Assembly (NCBI GenBank): GCA_965637545.1
Contig: OZ281494.1
Span: forward strand, 8,742,001 to 8,806,000
From: Phallusia mammillata
Taxonomy: Eukaryota
Direction of reading: 5' to 3'
DNA length: 64,000 nucleotides
Position numbers and translations under genes: made by a program. Within the stretch, counting starts at the first letter, position 1; every line of letters begins with the position of its first letter. Positions 45,634 to 62,381 of the stretch are shown in pieces. Under the pieces are notes generated by a model, which did not search any database, was not told the origin of the DNA, and saw only the letters and a program-made list of their open reading frames with translations.

Positions 45634-48353
45634 TTAGAAAACGCAGACATGCTGACTGGGATCAGAGAAATCAAATCCAAGACATTGTTCTGTCACATTC
45701 TGAAAATATACATGAAGGAATAATATAGTGAACTAATAGAGTGACAAGCAATGATATACCTCTTGGTTAATATTAGTAAAACTATAAACACGCCATGTAT
45801 TTAGACAAATGTTTAACTTCGCTAAGATCACAACCAGGGCTAGTAGGCTATTTTGAAATAGTCATTGACTGATTGCTTTTTATGAACCATTGTGTCAATA
45901 AAATACACTCCAATACTTTCCTATTAGGGCAAAACTGATCCAGATTAGTTACCTGAAGCATAGAAGTAAGAGAGTTTCCAGAAAAGTCTGCATAGTAAAC
46001 TCCTGGCTTGCGGCATACGACTCCAATGGATTCAATCTAGAAACAAAACGGTTGATTTTGACATGAACTTGCATTCCAGAAATTTCGATTTGAAAGATCT
46101 TCCAGCAATTAAAGTATTGGTATGACTTTGTTCATACCAATTTGCTTCTGGGTTCGCCGTACTCTGGATCCGACGAGAGAGCAGTTGCCTGCATCCAATT
46201 GTCGGCTACGTTAAAACTTTTGATGTTTTCCATTCCGATAAACATGCCTCGACTCAATGTTGCGAGTCCTACAAAAATAAGATTCGAACATTATGATCGT
46301 ATACGCCATGATGTAAGACTGCTGACCGGTGATACTGCCTTAATCATGACTCATGTACTTAACCTAAAACTGAATATAACAGATAAACTGACAGAAAATT
46401 CCACTTACCATTATGTGACAGATCCAACTCGCGCAACTGAGGCATGTGAGCAAAGGTATAGTCGTCAATTGTTCTGATGACGTTGTAGCGCAGGTTCAAT
46501 GTTTTCAGTGACGTCAGGCCGCTGAACGTTCCCAGCGTGATCTTATTCAACTTGTTTCCTAGAAGACAGATGCATTGAGTTTTATTATTAGGCACTGCCG
46601 TATAGGATTTGTGAAATTTTAAAATTAGCGATATTTGGATGGTGTTGAAAACCTATTTTATTTTTTGCAACCAAAGGATATGAGAATGGTTTATTTATCG
46701 TATATATTCTGGCAGTTTACCAGACAAGTCCAAGGTCTCCAAATTTGGTTTGCTGTTGAAAGCACCATCCTCGATGCTTTCGATCACGTTGTCCTTCAGA
46801 GATAAATGTTTAAGAGAGTTCATTCCTGTAAGTTTGCTGCCATCAAGTGAGGAAATACGGTTGTAGGCGAGGTGGAGGTACTTGAGTTGCCATAGAGACG
46901 CGAAGGCGGCGCTTAACCACCGGCTGATGTTGTTGTTATCGAGATAAAGGTACTGGACCTAGTTCAGTAAGAAGTCAAAATGGACCCATGTCAATATGTG
47001 TATGGTTTAAAACAAATAATTACGACAGCATGGCACACAAATCACTGGTTGCGTATGGTTTGCAGCATCCTATGATTTAGACTACCTGGTCAAGTCCCTG
47101 AAATGTGAAGAAGTTGATCGAAGTAAGATTGTTGTTGTTCAAATTTAAAGTTTTGACGTTGCTCAGTGGCACGAACGACCGCGGTTGGATAGTTGTGATG
47201 GAGTTATCTCCCAAATCCAGATTCTCCAGATTCGATGCACCAGAAAAGGTCAAAAGTCCAATACTGACAAGGCTATTTTGGCCAAGATTCAGTTCCTAGA
47301 GAAGACAGAATAATTGCTTTTTTCAGCACCTTGTGTATTGAAGTCGCTAACTACAAGGTAGGAATTTTTCAATTATTTTGCGATTTGGAAGGTACGATAA
47401 CCGTCGTTGCGAAAGCGGCAATATCTATTTAATGTTTACCTTAAGATTAGGTACGGATCCAAAACCAACGTCTTCTATAGCGCTGACCCCAGACTCGGCC
47501 ATGATAAGGCGATATGAGATTGTGTTTGACGTTGTGTCATCTTCTGTATCAGTAACTGCAGACTCTTCTGCAAGAACAAATTAAGACTTGAGCAAAGAAC
47601 ACTGTACTGAACTTTCAACAAGTCTAAAAGAGGTACATTGATCGCTTGTGTGAGTATGATGCAGGGTATGCTGTCAAATACCATCAATAATTCCGTATGC
47701 GGTATTGGAATTACACCTTCTTGGTAACAAGACAACATCAACGCAAACATTTAAATGCATCAAGTAGTTCAAAAACACTATTTGTATGATAGCCCATGCA
47801 TTTTCTTATTGGTTGTGCTTTATCACCCAAAATTTTCCATCGTTTTTGAAAATTTCCCCGTCATATATACACTTTAGAGTTAGCGTTTAAATTTAGCTTA
47901 ACATATTAACATACAATGCTCGACCTTGTTAAGTTGTTGTTCAGCTTCCAGTATTACAAAACTTATGACTTTCCTTGATGGCAAACTTCCTTTTTTTTAA
48001 ACATGCTTAAATAGTTTAAAGCAAAATAAATTTTTGGAAACTTACTTTGCTTGGCAGGGTTTTGGATTCCGTGGAGAGTTGCATACGTAAAGTTTTCATT
48101 AATTGTGATTGGTCCGTCTAGGTGACACGTGACAGTCACAGTAGTTTCGTTGCCGTAGTGAGACAGGACCCTGGTGCATTCATCTGCAATGGCAGGAAAA
48201 TAACTTTTACTCCGGACATAAAGTTACACAATCACATACATGTTAAAGCACCAGAGTTTATGAAGCCTTGCAATTCTTACCTTGATTTTCTTGAGCCACG
48301 GCAAAAGTGGCGCACAATGCCAATACTAGAATAGCAACCAGCTTTGTCAACAT
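45634..48353 (-). CDS. Secreted LRR-only protein, copy A (about 11-12 typical 24-aa LRRs, no TM); intact only if two small exons are skipped
   Basis: Signal exon 48281-48353 (MLTKLVAILVLALCATFAVAQ), Cys-containing cap exon, LRR exons (ELNLGQNSL, LDLGDNSI, LNLNNNNL, LHLAYNRI, LSLKDNVI, LDLSGNKL, LNLRYNVI, LDLSHN), last exon NVTEQCLGFDFSDPSQHVCVF*. Exons 47925-47973 and 47682-47716 carry 1- and 2-nt deletions relative to copy B. Confidence 0.8.
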
Positions 48354-51110: not shown

Positions 51111-52206
51111 ATATACTTTTGTGGGTACAAGGCCGTGGCCCAAAACGGGATGTCAAAATAACCAAACTCTGCTATATGGTCAAATATGTGTCTTTCAATA
51201 AGAAGGCTCTAGGATTCATTAGGCAAGTTTTTAATGACGTGAAAATCAAAGTTTTATATACAATATCAGGATACGATCCAGGTATTCGTGTGACGCAACT
51301 TAATACTAGCTCTGAGTCCAGTTAGTACCTTCGTGCAATAAAACAAGGCTAGAAATCAAGTGTTTGACGCCCTAAATGCGGCGTCGCTAACATATGTTGC
51401 GAAAGATAAAACAACGTCGCAAACAGGATCAATTAAACGCATTAAAGCTGAGTAATGCCTTCCTCGGAATACTAATTATTAATACCCTGAATATAATAGG
51501 TAACGTTCTAAAGCTGCGTTAAGTGACAACAGAGGAAATAACAATCATGAACAATGAGCTAAGAGCTGGCGGCATATGGGCTTTTCTCCAACTAAAATGC
51601 AACCAAGAAAACTAACAGTTAGGATAGCGGCCCTTTACGTTTGAAGTATGTTCAGATTAGTTGTACAGTAGTTGCACAGAGAAGAACTATGCATTTGCTC
51701 ATTTTTCAAGAAAGCAATAGAAACGCAGCTTCTAAATGCCATTCAAAATATTGCTTGCCTAACTTGTACATGCATGGAAAAACTCGTTAGGGTAAAAGTC
51801 TAAAAAAATGAAAAAAAATGCTACTGTTACCAATTTAAATGTGATAATTTGTTTGACCCATTTACATAAAAAACTATATTTTTTCACTGTTTATGGCCGT
51901 AATTTTCACCAGCTGTTTTCAAACGTGAGCAATTCAGGATAGAGGTCATTTCCCATAGCATGAGTAATTGAGGAAAAAGCTGTTTTCGGCTTTATAACAC
52001 GTAACAAGTATTGCCGCGATTTTGTTTGCCGTCCTGTTGAACTAAAGTTGCAAAGGAAAACTTTTGTGAAGTCACATAACAAAAGTAAGTACCATTACAA
52101 TAATGCTAACAGTAGTTTCATGTTTAAGGGAAGGTTATATGTGCAGTAAAAATGACAACAAAAATTTGTTATAAAAACAGTCATATTGTGTTGCATTGTT
52201 TTACAG

Positions 52207-53162
52207 ATGAACAGCAAGGTGTTCTCTATCGTTTTGATCTGCCTTCTTGTTTTCTGTCGCCAAAGCGATGCATCATGGTCGAAAATAAAAAAAATTGCTA
52301 AAGCAGCAGCTAAAGGAGCAGCAAGGTAAACTGTTTTCTTAAATAGAAATCGTTAGACATTCTAACCAAGCGTAAGACAATATGTTAAGTCTAGCTTCTT
52401 AGAGAGTATTTCTGACTGAGAAATTTTACCAGTGTTTATGTTAACATTTAGACATAACACTATAACGATAAAAAAATACGAAATGATTTAATTGGTTTCT
52501 ATTTCTCTGAAGTTTGGCACTACATTGGCTTGTGAACAACACGCTTTAATACATCTGATACCGATGCAATATGATTGTTGATTTGAAGTTATAAAAACAA
52601 AATAGTAAGCCTAAACTAAAAAGAAAAAAAAACTTTTAGATTGATACAAGCTCCAACATTTACGCAAATCTGTGTGGAACACCAATAAAAAAATTGACAC
52701 GAAAAAACGACCTTTTTTTCTTTATAACCTATGCAAGTGATTAGCTAAACTAAATTTGAATTTTATTGCGTCTTTTTCAGTGCACTTGGAGATTCTAGAC
52801 AGCACGAAAGATTGACCATGGGTAAGTTACTTATAACAAAAAATAGATTTTACAGCAGGGATAGGCAACCTTTTCTTCTATTGCAACCGTTTGAAACTGA
52901 AATTTTATCGCGGACCGGCTATCAAAAAAACAAAACAAAAAAAACTACAAATATTTGAAAACGTCTAAATATGTTTATCATCCCGGAAAAACATTGGCAA
53001 AATGTTCCTGAGCATTTAACCTAAAAAATTACTCGGCCCTGGTAACGAACTCGTCGTGGACCGGCAGTTGCCCACAGCTGTTTTAAAGGACGAACTATCA
53101 CATATTTCGTTGTTTCAGATGACATCGAATTCATGGAAGAAATGGAAGACCTATTTGATTAG
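52207..53162 (+). CDS. Candidate antimicrobial peptide precursor 1 (signal + cationic amphipathic helix + Gly + acidic tail; styelin/clavanin-type architecture), 67 aa
   Basis: join(52207-52325, 52781-52821, 53119-53162) = MNSKVFSIVLICLLVFCRQSDA-SWSKIKKIAKAAAKGAASAL-G-DSRQHERLTMDDIEFMEEMEDLFD*. All junctions are GT-AG and phase-consistent. An upstream non-coding exon has its donor at about 52085, and AATAAA lies at about 53206. Confidence 0.85.
52856..53080. mobile_element. hAT-like MITE in intron 2 of peptide gene 1
   Basis: Imperfect TIR CAGGGATAGGCAAC / GTTGCCCACAGCTG with near-identical 8-bp flanks TTTTACAG / TTTTAAAG. Confidence 0.55.
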
Positions 53163-55070
53163 TGTGAATCGTTCACACTGTTTTATTACGTGAATTGACA
53201 TTCATAATAAATAAAAAATTACGTGGACATTACCAAAAAATTGTGAATTTGGCAGCGTATTAAGGCAGTTTGATCCAAAGACGTTACACCAACCACGAAT
53301 CATTTAACTTTTTTAGTTTTATGCGCGCCAACCTGTCTGTTTTCTCAGTTCAAAAAAACATGAGAAGCATGCACTCACAGTGGAATTTAATGTCATCTCG
53401 TCACAAATTATTTTAACGTGTGGAATAATGTCAACTATTCGGTTTTTCCATCACTCACGTGTGTATTGTAGTTTTTAATATTGCACAAATTAAGTCTAAA
53501 ACGTTTATTCTTTGTCCCAACTTTTTTGTAAAGCGTTGCCTAATTGCAAAGCAAGCAAATGTCTTAAAACATACAGCATTTCAGCCTGCATGCCTATTTG
53601 GTTTTTGAATTTATAAACCATTTGAGTCAAACAGGGGCTAATTTTTTTTAAATGAATGTTTTCTATTACACACTGACATGGGTAGAAGTTTAACTGTTAA
53701 TAAATGACCAAAACTGGACCGGAACCTGCATTTGTTGGAATAAATCTGTAATTAGATTCAAAAGTTGATGAAATAGTGGAACCAAGAGTCAATTTATTAT
53801 TCTGGCCCGGTTCAAGGCCGTTTAATATGAACTTGAGCACAAAACCGACTAGAAAATCCCGCCCGAAAAATAATTAGAAGTTGTTTGATTTACGCGCACT
53901 CATTGCATTGTAAAAGCTCACACAAAGTTCAATAATACCATCCTGCTTCCACAGCCATATGGGGATACTTAAAGTTCACGACATGAAGGCGGTGCTTGGT
54001 ACGGTCCTAAATACAATAGGTTTGCCAGGAAATTAAAGCTACAATTCAAAATCTTCCGAAAATAGCGGCTGCTCAACAGTTTCCTGTCTGCCGTTAAACA
54101 TATTGTACAACTGCAATATGTTTAAACCGCACGGCAAGTGGCATATGCTTTGAAATATGTTGATGTGTCAAGTCCCATAGCTGTTGCAGTTGCAAAGCAA
54201 TTTTTTTTTCATTTACAGTCACAAACTTGTGCCTTTTCCTCAAACTAGACAAAAAGTGTTACCCTAAACTAAACCCTGCTACGAATGATTTAAACCCTGC
54301 TACGAATGACAAATGATAACGAATGATTGTGCCTCTAATCATTGAGCAGGTGCCTGTAACGATTTTGTTCGCGCAATCTGTAGAATAAAATAGATTCGAC
54401 AAGTTAATGTCACTGGTCGAGGTTGTGACAAAAACTGTGTTTTTTTACATAGTTCTGTACCGCATATATTAGTACTCAAGCTTGGAGAAAACAAGTTTGG
54501 CCCAAATAAAAAGGATCGTATTTATTATTAAAAATTGCACGCCAAAATCATTTGTATTTGACGAGTCAGCAAATATTGTCATTGCAAACGCTTATGCTCC
54601 GTTGCGTCACCTATCGAAGATTAGCAGGTCTGTGCCGTGAGTTCTTGTGTTAGTAGTTCTATCAGGAAACTTGGCTTAAAACGCATTAAACGTCCGTTGT
54701 GGGTCGAAACGTAGTAAATTAAACAACTTGTTCCTAGGCCACCTAAGTGAAATTTTATCGCCGCTCAGATTAGAATTTGCAACCAAATCCAGAAGTTGTA
54801 TTAGGTTACTTAAAGTAACCTTTTCAAGACAATAACACATTAGGTTAACACATCGTTTTTACTTTATTTAATCTCTGCATTGTGAGATAATAGGAAAACA
54901 ATGGCATCGAAAACTTCGTTTACGAGAGTATGTATACAAGTACAACGTATGCAAGTGCAATGGTGTAAGGGAGTAGTATGGTGGCAATGACTTGGCGTGT
55001 TGCGAGTTTTTTCTCCGTGTAAAGACCAGGATAGAAACTCTTGAAACATCATGGTTTGCAGTAACTCAGC

Positions 55071-57825
55071 TTATAAAACGCAGACATGTTGACTGGGATC
55101 CGAGAAATCAAAGCCAAGAGCTTGTTCTGTCACATTCTGAAAATATACACATGAATGATTAATGTAGTGAACTAATAGAGTGACAAGCAATGATGTACCG
55201 CTTGGTTAATATTAGTAAAACTATAAACACGCCATGTATTCAGACAAATGTTTAACTTCGCTATAATATCACAACCAGGGCTAGTAGGCTATTTTGAAAT
55301 AGTCATTGGCTGTTCGTTTTGTATGAACCATTGTGTCAATAAAATACGATACTTTCCTCTAAGGGCAAAACTGATTCAGATTAGATACCTGAAGCATAGA
55401 AGTCAGAGAGTTTCCAGAAAAGTCTGCATAGTAAACTCCTGGCTTGCGACATACGACTCCAATAGCTTCAATCTAGAAACAAAACTCTTGTTTTTGACAT
55501 GAACTTGCATTTCAGAAATTTCGATTCGTAAGATCTCACAGCAATTAGAGTACAAGTTTGTTCTTACCAATTTGTTTCTCGGTTCGTCGAACTCAGGTTC
55601 CGATGAGAGAGCAGTTGCCTGCATCCAATTGTCGGCTACGTTAAAACTGTTGATGTTTTCCATTCCGATAAACATGCCTCGACTCAATGTTGCGAGACCT
55701 ACGAAAACAAGATTCGAACATTATGATCGTATATGCCATGATGTAAGACTGCTGACCGGTGATACTGCCGTAATTTAGACTAATTTACTTAACCTAAAAC
55801 TGAATACAACAGATAAACTGAGAAAAAAATCCACTCACCATTATGTGACAGATCCAACTCGCGCAACTGATGCATTTGAGCAAAGGAATAGTCGTCAATT
55901 GTTCTGATGACGTTGTAGCGCAGATTTAATGTTTTCAGTGATGTAAGACCTCTGAACGTGTCCACCGTAATCTTACTCAATTTGTTGCCTAAAAGACATG
56001 AAATGCACTTTGCTAATACATGTCTATATGATCGACAATTTTGAAATCAGGACATACCAGACAAGTCCAAGGTCTCTAAATTTGGTTTGCCGTTGAAAGC
56101 ACCATCCTCGATGCTTTCGATCACGTTGTCCTTCAGAGATAAATATTTAAGAGAGTTCATTCCTGTAAGTTTGCTGCCATCAAGTGAGGAAATACGGTTG
56201 TAGGCGAGGTGGAGGTACTCGAGTTGCCATAGATACGCGAACGCGGCGCTGGACCACAAGCTGATGTTGTTGTTATCAAGGTTGATGAAGTTGACCTAAA
56301 TCAGAAAGAAGGCCTGGGTAAAAAATGCTTGCGAATTTTCCGATGTCATTATTTTTGTGGTTTTAATACCAACAATCAATTACTCTTGCAGGATGACACA
56401 CAATCACTGGTCTCGTGCTCTTTGTAGCATAATATGTTTTAGACTACCTGGTCAAGTCCCTGAAATGTGAAGAAGTTGATCGAAGTAAGATTATTGTTGT
56501 TCAAATTCAAAGTCTTAGCGCTGCTCAGTGGCACGAACGATCTTGGTTGGATATTTATGATGGAGTTATCTCCCAAATCCAGAATCTCCAGATTCGATGC
56601 ACCAGAAAAGGTCAAAAGTCCGATATTGGTAAGGCTATTTTTGCCAAAGTTCAGTTCCTGATGAAAACAAATGTGCAATAAAGTTTTTGCTGCCTGAAAG
56701 GCCTTGCGTAATAACACCTGGTAGTAGTTTATCGATTATTTTGCAATTTTATAAATGCGCGATCACGCTACTCAGAAGATTCAGTCGTTAAAAACTCTTG
56801 AAGCGGCTTTATTTATTGTTTACCTTAAGATTAGGTACGGATCCCAAACCACCATCTTCTATAGCGCTGACCCCAGAGTCGGCCATGATAAGGCGATATG
56901 AGATTGTGTTTGAAGTTGTGTCATCTTCTGTATCAGTAAGCGCAGACTCTTCTGCAACAACAAATTAAGACTTGAGCGAAGAACATTAAAGTTCTAATGT
57001 AGAATGCGCGCGTGGAGAATGAATGTTTTCAGCACAACACGGCTTTAATGTTTAAACTTTGTAAAACTATATACTGTGAGTATGATTAATGGTTTGCTGT
57101 CAGATACCATCCTCAAATGCGTTCTCGGCATTCGAATTAAACACCTTCGTGGCAACAAGATAACATCAACAAAAACATTTAAATGCGCCAACCAGTTCCA
57201 AAACGGTTTATGGTTGTCCACATACTTTTTCATGTTGGTTGTGATTTCTCACCCAAGTTTTTTACATCACGTCATATATCTACTATACACTTGAGCGTTT
57301 AAATCTAGGTTCCGCTCAACATATGAACATGAAATGCGCCGCCTTGTAAAGTTGTTGTTCAGTTTCCAGTATTACAAAACGCGTGACTTTGCCTTTATAG
57401 AAAACATCCATTTCGGTAAACATGCTAAATTAGTGTAAAGCAGAACGAATGTAACAACACAAAAGTTGAAACTTACTTTGCTTGGCGAAGTTTTGAATTC
57501 CGTGGAGAGTCGCATATGTAAAGTTTTCATTGATTGTGATTGTTCCGTCAAGGTGACACGTGACCGTCACAGTGGTTTCGTTGCCATAGTGAGATATGAC
57601 CCTAGTGCATTCATCTGCAATGGCGGAAATATTACCTTTATGTTGCACTAGTATAGTATTTCTATAACTTCGGACAAGAATTACACAGTCACATACATGT
57701 TAAACTTTGACATGTTAAAGCACCGGATTTTATCAAACCTTATAACTCTTACCTTGATTTTCTTGAGCCACAGCAAAAGTGGCGTACAGTGCCAATACTA
57801 GAATTGCGACCAGTTTTGACATCAT
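55071..57825 (-). CDS. Secreted LRR-only protein, copy B
   Basis: Signal exon 57753-57825 (MMSKLVAILVLALYATFAVAQ). Same exon series as copy A, with in-frame small exons 57343-57392 (GC donor) and 57108-57144. Ends NVTEQALGFDFSDPSQHVCVL*. Confidence 0.85.
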
Positions 57826-59934: not shown

Positions 59935-60623
59935 TTAATCTTCTTCTGCAGCATCCTCCAATTCATCGTTGTTGTCCTTCTCGTTCTCTTGTTCTTTGTC
60001 TAAAATTTAAATAGTGATTCAATAGTGGTCAAAGAAATGCAAAAGCTGCATAAAGCGGTAGCTAGAACTCGCTATTTGACTGTCAAATACTTTTACTTGG
60101 TAGACTGGAACTTAAAATTGTATACAAGGTTTTTTTTTCGGAGGTTTTTTAGGTAACACTTATTTCAAGATAGTTGGGTATATCTAGCCTACTTTCTAAC
60201 TAATTTATTGATAAAATTCGCATTATTTACAAAATCCACCAATATATGGCGACTGGAAAAACAACATTAGGGGCGATAGCTATGAACGCAGTAATGTTTG
60301 CAGTAACTCTTTTGCTGGCGATATTTTTCCTGTAAAAGACTCTTACCTGACAAAAATTACGGGCAAAAACATATTACACCAGGGTTAGGCAAATCTCAGG
60401 CTTGTTAAATTTAGCTAAAATGCACGAATATAATATTCTGTATTCTATAACACTTAAAATTATCACATCTGTTGACAAACAAATATTATAACGCACCTCC
60501 TAGGTTGAAACGTCGCCTTGCAACGTATCTTCGACGACTTCCATCATGCCATGCGCCTTCACATTCTTCAACCATGGTGCAGAGCACGCCGATAAAGAGA
60601 AGAGCGAGCAAGAGCTTGTTCAT
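59935..60623 (-). CDS. Candidate cationic host-defence peptide precursor 2 (Arg-rich peptide + Gly + acidic tail), 63 aa
   Basis: complement join(59935-59999, 60497-60623) = MNKLLLALLFIGVLCTMVEECEG-AWHDGSRRRYVARRRFNL-G-DKEQENEKDNNDELEDAAEED*. The acceptor AG lies directly before the ATG, and a 5' UTR exon has donor GTAAGT at 60692. Confidence 0.8.
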
Positions 60624-61784: not shown

Positions 61785-62381
61785 TTGCTTGTTTGGAGGC
61801 AGACAATACTTCTACTGTATTACAACCCGACGCCTTGCGTTTCTACAAATCGACGCTGGCTATTTAATTGCCTTGTTTCGGGCGAAAAGCTTCTTGTCTT
61901 TACAGTTTTGTTGAATAAATCTCGTTTTAGAAACTTTAACATTTGTATTGTTGTGGACCCAGTAGCGTATAAAAAAAGTGTTTCGAGGATGCGAAACAGA
62001 GGAGAAGATCCAGGCACAGGAGATGCGTTGAGAGCAGCAAAGGCTTTTTTCTTTCTGTTCCTGATGCTCGGTGGAACTTGGGTTTTGGCTTTTTTTGCAG
62101 GTAAATTGGTATCTAAACACATACATTTGCGGAGCTAGATTGGCTACTTTTCAAAGAGGTGGTTTGGATTTAACAAACTCATATCGTATTTTACAGGAAT
62201 CGGAGACGAGAATTCGAATGAGGTGTTCATGTACATTCATAGCTTGGTAAACGGGTCGCAGGGAATCGTCGTCTTTCTGCTGTACTGCGTCATGGATGAC
62301 GACATCAGACAGGAAGTCCTGTTGCGCATGCGCAATGCTGGTATCAGAACGGAGCAGCAGCTTAACGCAAACCCACAATAG
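61785..62381 (+). pseudogene. Orphan 3' fragment of a fourth adhesion GPCR (ECL2/TM5-like, TM6, TM7), inverted relative to the cluster
   Basis: The ORF reads ..DALRAAKAFFFLFLMLGGTWVLAFFAG up to a GT donor at 62101. Exon 62197-62381 encodes IGDENSNEVFMYIHSLVNGSQGIVVFLLYC..*. The CWL motif reads RWL, and no TM1-3 or GAIN exons were found upstream on the plus strand. Confidence 0.65.

Follow-up and report, generated by a model that had tools for sequence, protein, structure and literature searches.

An expressed gene of four exons, the first of which is non-coding, lies on the forward strand of the window (the whole 64-kb stretch of Phallusia mammillata DNA that was analysed); it is real, spliced and transcribed, and it probably encodes the prepropeptide of a linear cationic alpha-helical host-defence peptide of the antimicrobial type, to be released by the processing steps proposed below. 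Reading the exons from the sequence and splicing them by script gives a 204-nt in-frame CDS on the plus strand and a precursor of 67 aa, which is composed, in this order, of a 22-aa signal (MNSKVFSIVLICLLVFCRQSDA), a 20-aa core (SWSKIKKIAKAAAKGAASAL), a single Gly and a 24-aa tail (DSRQHERLTMDDIEFMEEMEDLFD). The gene is apparently unannotated to date.

Gene structure and transcripts

The features of the gene are collected in Table 1. All coding exons follow a pyrimidine tract and AG, and the intron donors are gtaaac and gtaagt.

Table 1. Features of the gene, in positions of the window
Feature	Position	Strand	Evidence and content
TATA-like element TATATTTTT	51875..51883	+	Pattern scan; ~30-35 nt upstream of the most 5' contig end
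Non-coding 5' exon	51912..52084 (start = minimum)	+	Joint 52084->52207 (GT..AG, skips 122) in X1, X2 and X3
Coding exon 1	52207..52325	+	Sequence, script splicing and contigs; signal residues 1-22 (52207-52272), first 17 residues of the core (52273 onward), Ser40 codon up to its second base
First coding intron	52326..52780	+	455 nt, gtaaac..tttcag, GC 0.29; joint in four runs
Coding exon 2	52781..52821	+	Script splicing and contigs; last core residues (S)AL, Gly43 (52788-52790), tail start DSRQHERLTM
Last intron	52822..53118	+	297 nt, gtaagt..tttcag; joint in X2, X3 and X7; repeat-like stretches at 52919-52951 and 53041-53072
Coding exon 3	53119..53162	+	Script splicing and contigs; remainder of the tail, (D)DIEFMEEMEDLFD, and TAG stop
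3' UTR	53163..53539 (3' end approximate)	+	AATAAA at 53206; contigs extend to 53350 (X2) and 53539 (X3)

Among the public sequencing runs, nine small ones cover the stretch in part, and two larger ones cover 98-99% of it. Contigs were examined in four of the small runs, which belong to three studies and are coded here as X1, X2, X3 and X7, their RNA nature being presumed. In these four runs and three studies there are contigs from which exactly the predicted coding introns are absent: the junction 52325|52781 is present in X1, X2, X3 and X7 and the junction 52821|53119 in X2, X3 and X7, both with GT..AG introns, and the coding sequence is identical across the contigs of the three studies. The sole contig of X1 that covers the last intron retains it, running continuously from 52779 to 53147 at high word depth, and the other three runs are spliced at this point; retention of this intron would alter the tail alone, after ..ERLTM. 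Intron-less contigs occurring alongside an intron-retaining form make up the pattern that is expected of RNA, and a processed DNA copy as the source of the intron-less contigs is a formal and unlikely alternative.

At the 5' side, the most extended transcript contig (from run X1) begins at 51912, and we infer a promoter role for the TATA-like element ahead of it. A scan with the NF-kB consensus found no site near the gene. The initiating ATG lies directly after a 'ttttacag' acceptor, because the non-coding 5' exon splices onto 52207. According to an ORF scan of the spliced mRNA, this exon holds a 3-codon uORF only and an in-frame stop ahead of the main ATG; the 67-codon ORF is the first one in the spliced mRNA that exceeds 3 codons, and it has an A at -3.

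An earlier note on this DNA had put forward a three-exon gene. Its three coding exons and their splicing were reproduced to the exact coordinate, and the check that it proposed, i.e. to look for the junctions in RNA, came out in its favour, with both coding junctions found exact in intron-less contigs; the exon count, however, has to be raised to four to accommodate the additional non-coding 5' exon. The note had also counted correctly: a signal of 22 aa, a core that has 5 Lys and lacks acidic residues, a Gly, and a tail of 24 aa with 10 Asp/Glu.

Some distance downstream, several unrelated transcript contigs in three runs match a piece of 44 nt (54315-54358) with 2-4 mismatches; this piece is probably either a short repeat element or part of a multi-copy transcript in which it is conserved.

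Properties of the precursor, its paralogue and the genomic surroundings

The signal displays n-, h- and c-regions, and its predicted cleavage point, SDA|SW, obeys the -3/-1 rule and coincides, in the alignment, with the end of the signal in the Ciona protein H2XPU9. The core is free of Cys. Helical properties were calculated with a HeliQuest-type script, the output of which agrees with the published values of KH.S908.1, Ci-MAM-A and Ci-PAP-A. For the core the script returned a hydrophobicity of 0.233, a hydrophobic moment of 0.437 (reached by 1.4% of shuffles) and a charge of +5, and for the 18-residue Cys-free window of the core a muH of 0.43-0.44; the low mean hydrophobicity is due to the core being Ala-rich. 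On a helical wheel all five Lys fall within one 160-degree arc, and Trp2, Ile5, Ile8 and Leu20 occupy the opposite face. By a rough hand estimate, the aggregation propensity would be near zero. The tail has an H of 0.147, a muH of 0.343 and a charge of -8, and the pI of the pro-form is ~4.9. The boundary between core and tail reads L-G|D-S, with no dibasic or monobasic site beside the Gly.

These values can be set beside a published screen for linear cationic peptides of this kind in Ciona (the LCAMP screen of Ohtsuka & Inagaki 2020, PMC7387483). That screen selects precursors of 50-100 residues with an N-terminal signal and no later transmembrane segment; a Cys-free 18-residue window with a hydrophobicity of 0-0.6, a moment of 0.1-1.0 and a charge of +3 to +10; a C-terminal anionic helical region with an H of -0.7 to 0.4, a muH of 0-0.5 and a charge of -10 to -3; and a boundary that has an acidic residue and no basic motif (PMC7387483). 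It also makes use of PROTEUS helix prediction, an AGGRESCAN range of -30 to 30 and a DeepLoc assignment as secreted (PMC7387483). The 67-aa precursor lies within the limits for length and signal, core window, anionic tail and boundary, i.e. for all of the computable criteria. All five of the five tested Ciona candidates that passed the screen were antimicrobial (PMC7387483).

The same runs hold an expressed paralogue transcript, the locus of which lies outside the window; within the 64-kb window, tblastn and blastn searches with the precursor found no paralogue. Over the signal part (52207-52271), contigs of the paralogue differ from the gene at 5 of 65 nt; beyond it they part from the gene and read ..D-A | G-W-K-K-L-K-R-F-G, again with a Trp at position 2. 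In a contig of 307 nt, 99 letters stand where the studied gene has 60, after which the match resumes in exon 2 (52787-52819, 2 mismatches in 33 nt). The core of the paralogue, of which the sequence ends alone are seen, is unrelated to that of the gene and counts 33 residues, starting with GWKKLKRFG and ending with GAMS, and is followed by G-D-S; its tail continues as ..T-I-D-D-I-E-L-I-E-E-M. The reading frame, the signal and the Gly-Asp boundary are all kept, and the changes in the tail are conservative (M to I, F to L). The gene and its paralogue form a small family with a shared signal and acidic tail and with differing cores. Families of antimicrobial peptides in which the signal and pro-piece are conserved and the core is variable have been described, with reference to frog studies, and Ciona behaves likewise (PMC7387483).

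A second small peptide gene is found ~7 kb downstream of the studied gene, on the minus strand (59935-60623). It has a signal (MNKLLLALLFIGVLCTMVEECEGA) and a core (WHDGSRRRYVARRRFNLGG), a GT donor and a ttttag acceptor, and then an acidic tail (DKEQENEKDNNDELEDAAEED). Its signal resembles the consensus of the 'novel family' in PMC7387483 (MNKSALLxLLxxGLxVLxExxxA), and its core resembles Ciona KH.C7.94 (..SRRRIYVARRRS..), the peptide of which has been shown to be antimicrobial (PMC7387483); a Pfam search with this second gene gave no match. Leucine-rich-repeat ORFs flank the studied gene on the minus strand (46359-46595 and 56439-56717), and leucine-rich-repeat exons lie between and beside both peptide genes. 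Further out (2449-41542 and ~61785-62138), exons that encode GAIN/GPS-type motifs (C.C.HTS.FA.L) together with seven-transmembrane segments stand in a row and look like tandem adhesion-GPCR-like genes; for one large exon of a neighbouring receptor gene a single protein was found (43% identical), which carries Pfam PF01825.

A Ciona relative and the proposed release of the peptide

The closest known relative is KH.S908.1 of Ciona intestinalis/robusta, a plausible homologue. In Table 1 of PMC7387483 this peptide is given as KGGKFLNFLKKAAKVGAKVGMAAL followed by G and DEGEIEAF..., and a search with this sequence recovered the full Ciona protein, H2XPU9, of 74 aa. Against E. coli and S. aureus the synthetic KH.S908.1 peptide has an MIC of less than 3.125 uM, and it remains active in 500 mM NaCl; in haemocytes, LPS induces its gene (PMC7387483). 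A pairwise BLASTP of the 67-mer with H2XPU9 gave an E of 3e-4, with 13/31 identities across the core-Gly-Asp boundary. In region-wise shuffles the whole precursor reached a z of 4.7-5.3 and the signal one of 3.5, and the tails taken alone showed no significant likeness. When the shuffles preserved the polar/apolar pattern, the match of the core to KH.S908.1 had a p of 0.036, and dermadistinctin K, a frog peptide and thus no candidate for close kinship, did better (p 0.008); the similarity of the core to known antimicrobial peptides is largely a matter of composition and amphipathic pattern.

The two precursors are of similar total length (74 aa in Ciona versus 67 aa) and have in common a 22-aa signal that ends in ..D-G/A and a Cys-free, Lys/Ala/Gly-rich amphipathic core, which ends in ..AAL in KH.S908.1 and in ..SAL here. 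In both, Gly-Asp comes next and then a helical tail of acidic character that lacks a basic cleavage site. They differ in the core, that of KH.S908.1 having 24 residues and starting with KGGKF, whereas that of the studied gene has 20 and starts with SW. The Ciona peptide has been assayed, whereas the present one is known from its sequence and transcripts.

Wider searches added no further relative. A word-index search with the 67-mer among 5.8 billion clustered proteins gave no candidate, exact look-ups of the 67-mer and of H2XPU9 in assemblies found none on record, and Pfam gave no match for H2XPU9. An exhaustive profile search (H2XPU9 plus the exon translations, 1.84 billion representatives) found no bridging sequence and returned only H2XPU9 and one other protein, P0003. 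The latter, an AK-rich repeat protein that matched the AK-rich core of the profile alone, was rejected as a relative and treated as low-complexity or convergent. It is a secreted repeat protein of 336 aa from a metagenome or genome collection, with four copies of W(H)KVGxxAKxxAKIGADILSKR, each followed by an acidic spacer, and resembles a polyprotein that has Lys-Arg sites and several copies of a cationic peptide.

We propose that the signal would be removed after Ala22 and that, inside the producing cell, the acidic tail (net -8) would neutralise the +5 core, which would result in a charge-neutralised storage pro-form. The tail would then be cut off between Gly43 and Asp44, in the manner of the Asp-side cut of styelins and clavanins, and Gly43 would be converted to a C-terminal amide on Leu42. 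The free 20-mer, SWSKIKKIAKAAAKGAASAL-NH2 (calculated monoisotopic mass 1998.21 Da, as against 1999.19 Da for the free acid and 2076.12 Da for a 79Br form), would fold into an amphipathic helix on anionic membranes and permeabilise microbes in a carpet-like fashion. The Gly|Asp cut, the amidation, the mature end and the activity are those that the precedents of Ciona, styelins and clavanins would predict.

Other readings of the gene have to be weighed against this proposal. The peptide could be secreted and cationic and nevertheless have a main role other than the killing of microbes, be it as a haemocyte cytolytic or allorejection effector, as an anti-fouling or anti-predator peptide of the tunic, or as a metamorphosis-associated peptide. 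Such a role is compatible with the fact that the screen of PMC7387483 lists Ci-META4 and Ci-META6, which are of the metamorphosis-associated kind and have the same precursor design, that reviews describe styelins as haemolytic and cytotoxic, and that the transcripts turn up in several runs from three studies without known immune challenge. Nevertheless, we judge it unlikely: the closest relative and all five tested Ciona peptides of the same design are potent antimicrobials, and as membrane-active peptides usually show both activities, the difference is one of emphasis more than of mechanism. A quite different role, in which the peptide would be amidated and would signal through a receptor as a neuropeptide or hormone, we consider very improbable. 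The signal peptide, the short product and a Gly placed as amidation donor would all suit it, and adhesion-GPCR-like genes occur in the same window, a relation of proximity only; yet the Gly lacks a neighbouring dibasic or monobasic site and cleavage would occur at Gly|Asp, like that of styelins and clavanins, the core is an amphipathic helix of Lys and Ala whose charge the acidic tail balances, and, in contrast to receptor ligands, it is hypervariable between the paralogues, in sequence as well as in length.

It is also conceivable that the transcript is real and its small ORF untranslated or non-functional, i.e. that it represents a non-coding or decaying copy, which would agree with the absence of the protein from all protein collections searched and with the one contig that retains the last intron. 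This we hold to be extremely unlikely, in view of an intact ORF that starts in a favourable context and precedes any other long ORF of the mRNA, of a signal, core and tail that are all coherent, of a coding sequence that does not vary between three studies, and of a paralogue in which the frame, the signal and the G-D tail are kept with conservative changes.

Taken as the precursor of an antimicrobial-type host-defence peptide, which is the reading that we prefer, the gene would add one expressed candidate to the salt-tolerant antimicrobial peptides. Together with its paralogue it shows a family of conserved signal and variable core, and next to the validated Ciona relative it offers a second species in which the release at Gly|Asp and the bromination of Trp2 can be asked about. 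The public protein collections that were searched seem to lack short multi-exon genes of this kind. The value of the finding is likely incremental, and no new principle is involved. The novelty that the earlier note claimed for the peptide holds in the searched literature, in which no paper contains the peptide string; nor is Phallusia mentioned in a review of ascidian immune peptides from 2023.

Comparison with styelins, clavanins, papillosin and dermaseptins

The earlier note had assigned the peptide to a styelin/clavanin type, an assignment that stands as regards the order of the parts, the length of the signal, the Gly and the acidic tail; membership of these families is not supported. The published styelin layout consists of a 22-aa signal, a peptide of 31-32 aa, an amidation Gly and a C-terminal pro-piece of 26 aa (PMC8659048), to which the 22 + 20 + G + 24 arrangement of the studied gene compares well apart from its shorter core. 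The gene thereby resembles the styelins in its 22-aa signal, its amidation-type Gly, its Asp-side boundary, its similar tail (24 versus 26) and its Trp at position 2, and the paralogue does so as well with its GW start and its core of 33 residues, against 32 for styelin D. Styelin D of Styela clava (32 residues) is amidated and indeed carries 6-Br-Trp at position 2, as the note had stated (PMC8659048); bromination of Trp2 in the present peptide is pure speculation. In styelins as in clavanins, cleavage takes place on the N-terminal side of D and DD (PMC7387483). The differences, in a comparison by described features, are as follows: the core of the gene comprises 20 residues, is rich in Ala and Lys where styelins are Phe-rich, and lacks Phe, Tyr and His as well as the KHK motif that has been described as conserved in styelins and botryllin.

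The clavanins of Styela clava are amidated helical haemocyte peptides that are followed by a Gly and an acidic tail, which is cut before DD, a design that the gene would share. However, clavanins have 23 residues and are rich in His and Phe, whereas the core of the gene is without either. Membership of the clavanins was rejected, a local alignment to clavanin A being no better than chance (z -0.45). Membership of the Ci-MAM group is doubtful and was set aside. A global alignment with the Ci-MAM signal consensus (MDRKIVFALxLVxxLxVSxxxA) has a z of 2.2, with only M, K and A identical, and such shuffles overstate the likeness of signal peptides.

Papillosin, a 34-residue antimicrobial peptide purified from the haemocytes of Halocynthia papillosa (sequence in PMC4306955), has several traits in common with the core of the gene, namely the octamer KAAAKGAA, a Trp near the N-terminus and a Lys/Ala/Gly-rich amphipathic character. 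In pattern-preserving shuffles the p for papillosin against the core was 0.015, which is not decisive, and papillosin is possibly another relative.

The frog dermaseptins, represented by dermadistinctin K (PDB 2jx6; Pfam PF12121, DD_K), have a WSKIK start and AK-rich repeats like those of the gene core. Among all of the peptides compared, dermadistinctin K gave the best-scoring core alignment. Frog precursors carry an acidic pro-piece ahead of the peptide and a Lys-Arg site. The likeness in WSKIK and AKAAAK, which the earlier note had pointed out and thought probably convergent, is real and remains below threshold: DD_K, the only Pfam match for the 67-mer, scores 11.2 bits against a gathering threshold of 20.9 (E 0.38), and a search of the PDB returned dermadistinctin K alone, with an E of 2. 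Kinship with the dermaseptins was rejected on the sub-threshold Pfam score, and the likeness would be convergence or chance at most.

That the gene, its GW-starting paralogue, KH.S908.1, papillosin and the styelins all belong to one pan-ascidian superfamily of common descent is doubtful, and we rate it as rather unlikely. The design of such a superfamily could be a 22-aa signal, a hypervariable cationic core with a Trp near its N-terminus, a Gly for amidation, a cut on the Asp side and an acidic tail. If the superfamily existed, it would point to a Gly|Asp-specific processing protease common to all ascidians, and it would be the tunicate counterpart of the dermaseptin superfamily of frogs, the dermaseptin-like WSKIK...AKAAAK having been reached independently.
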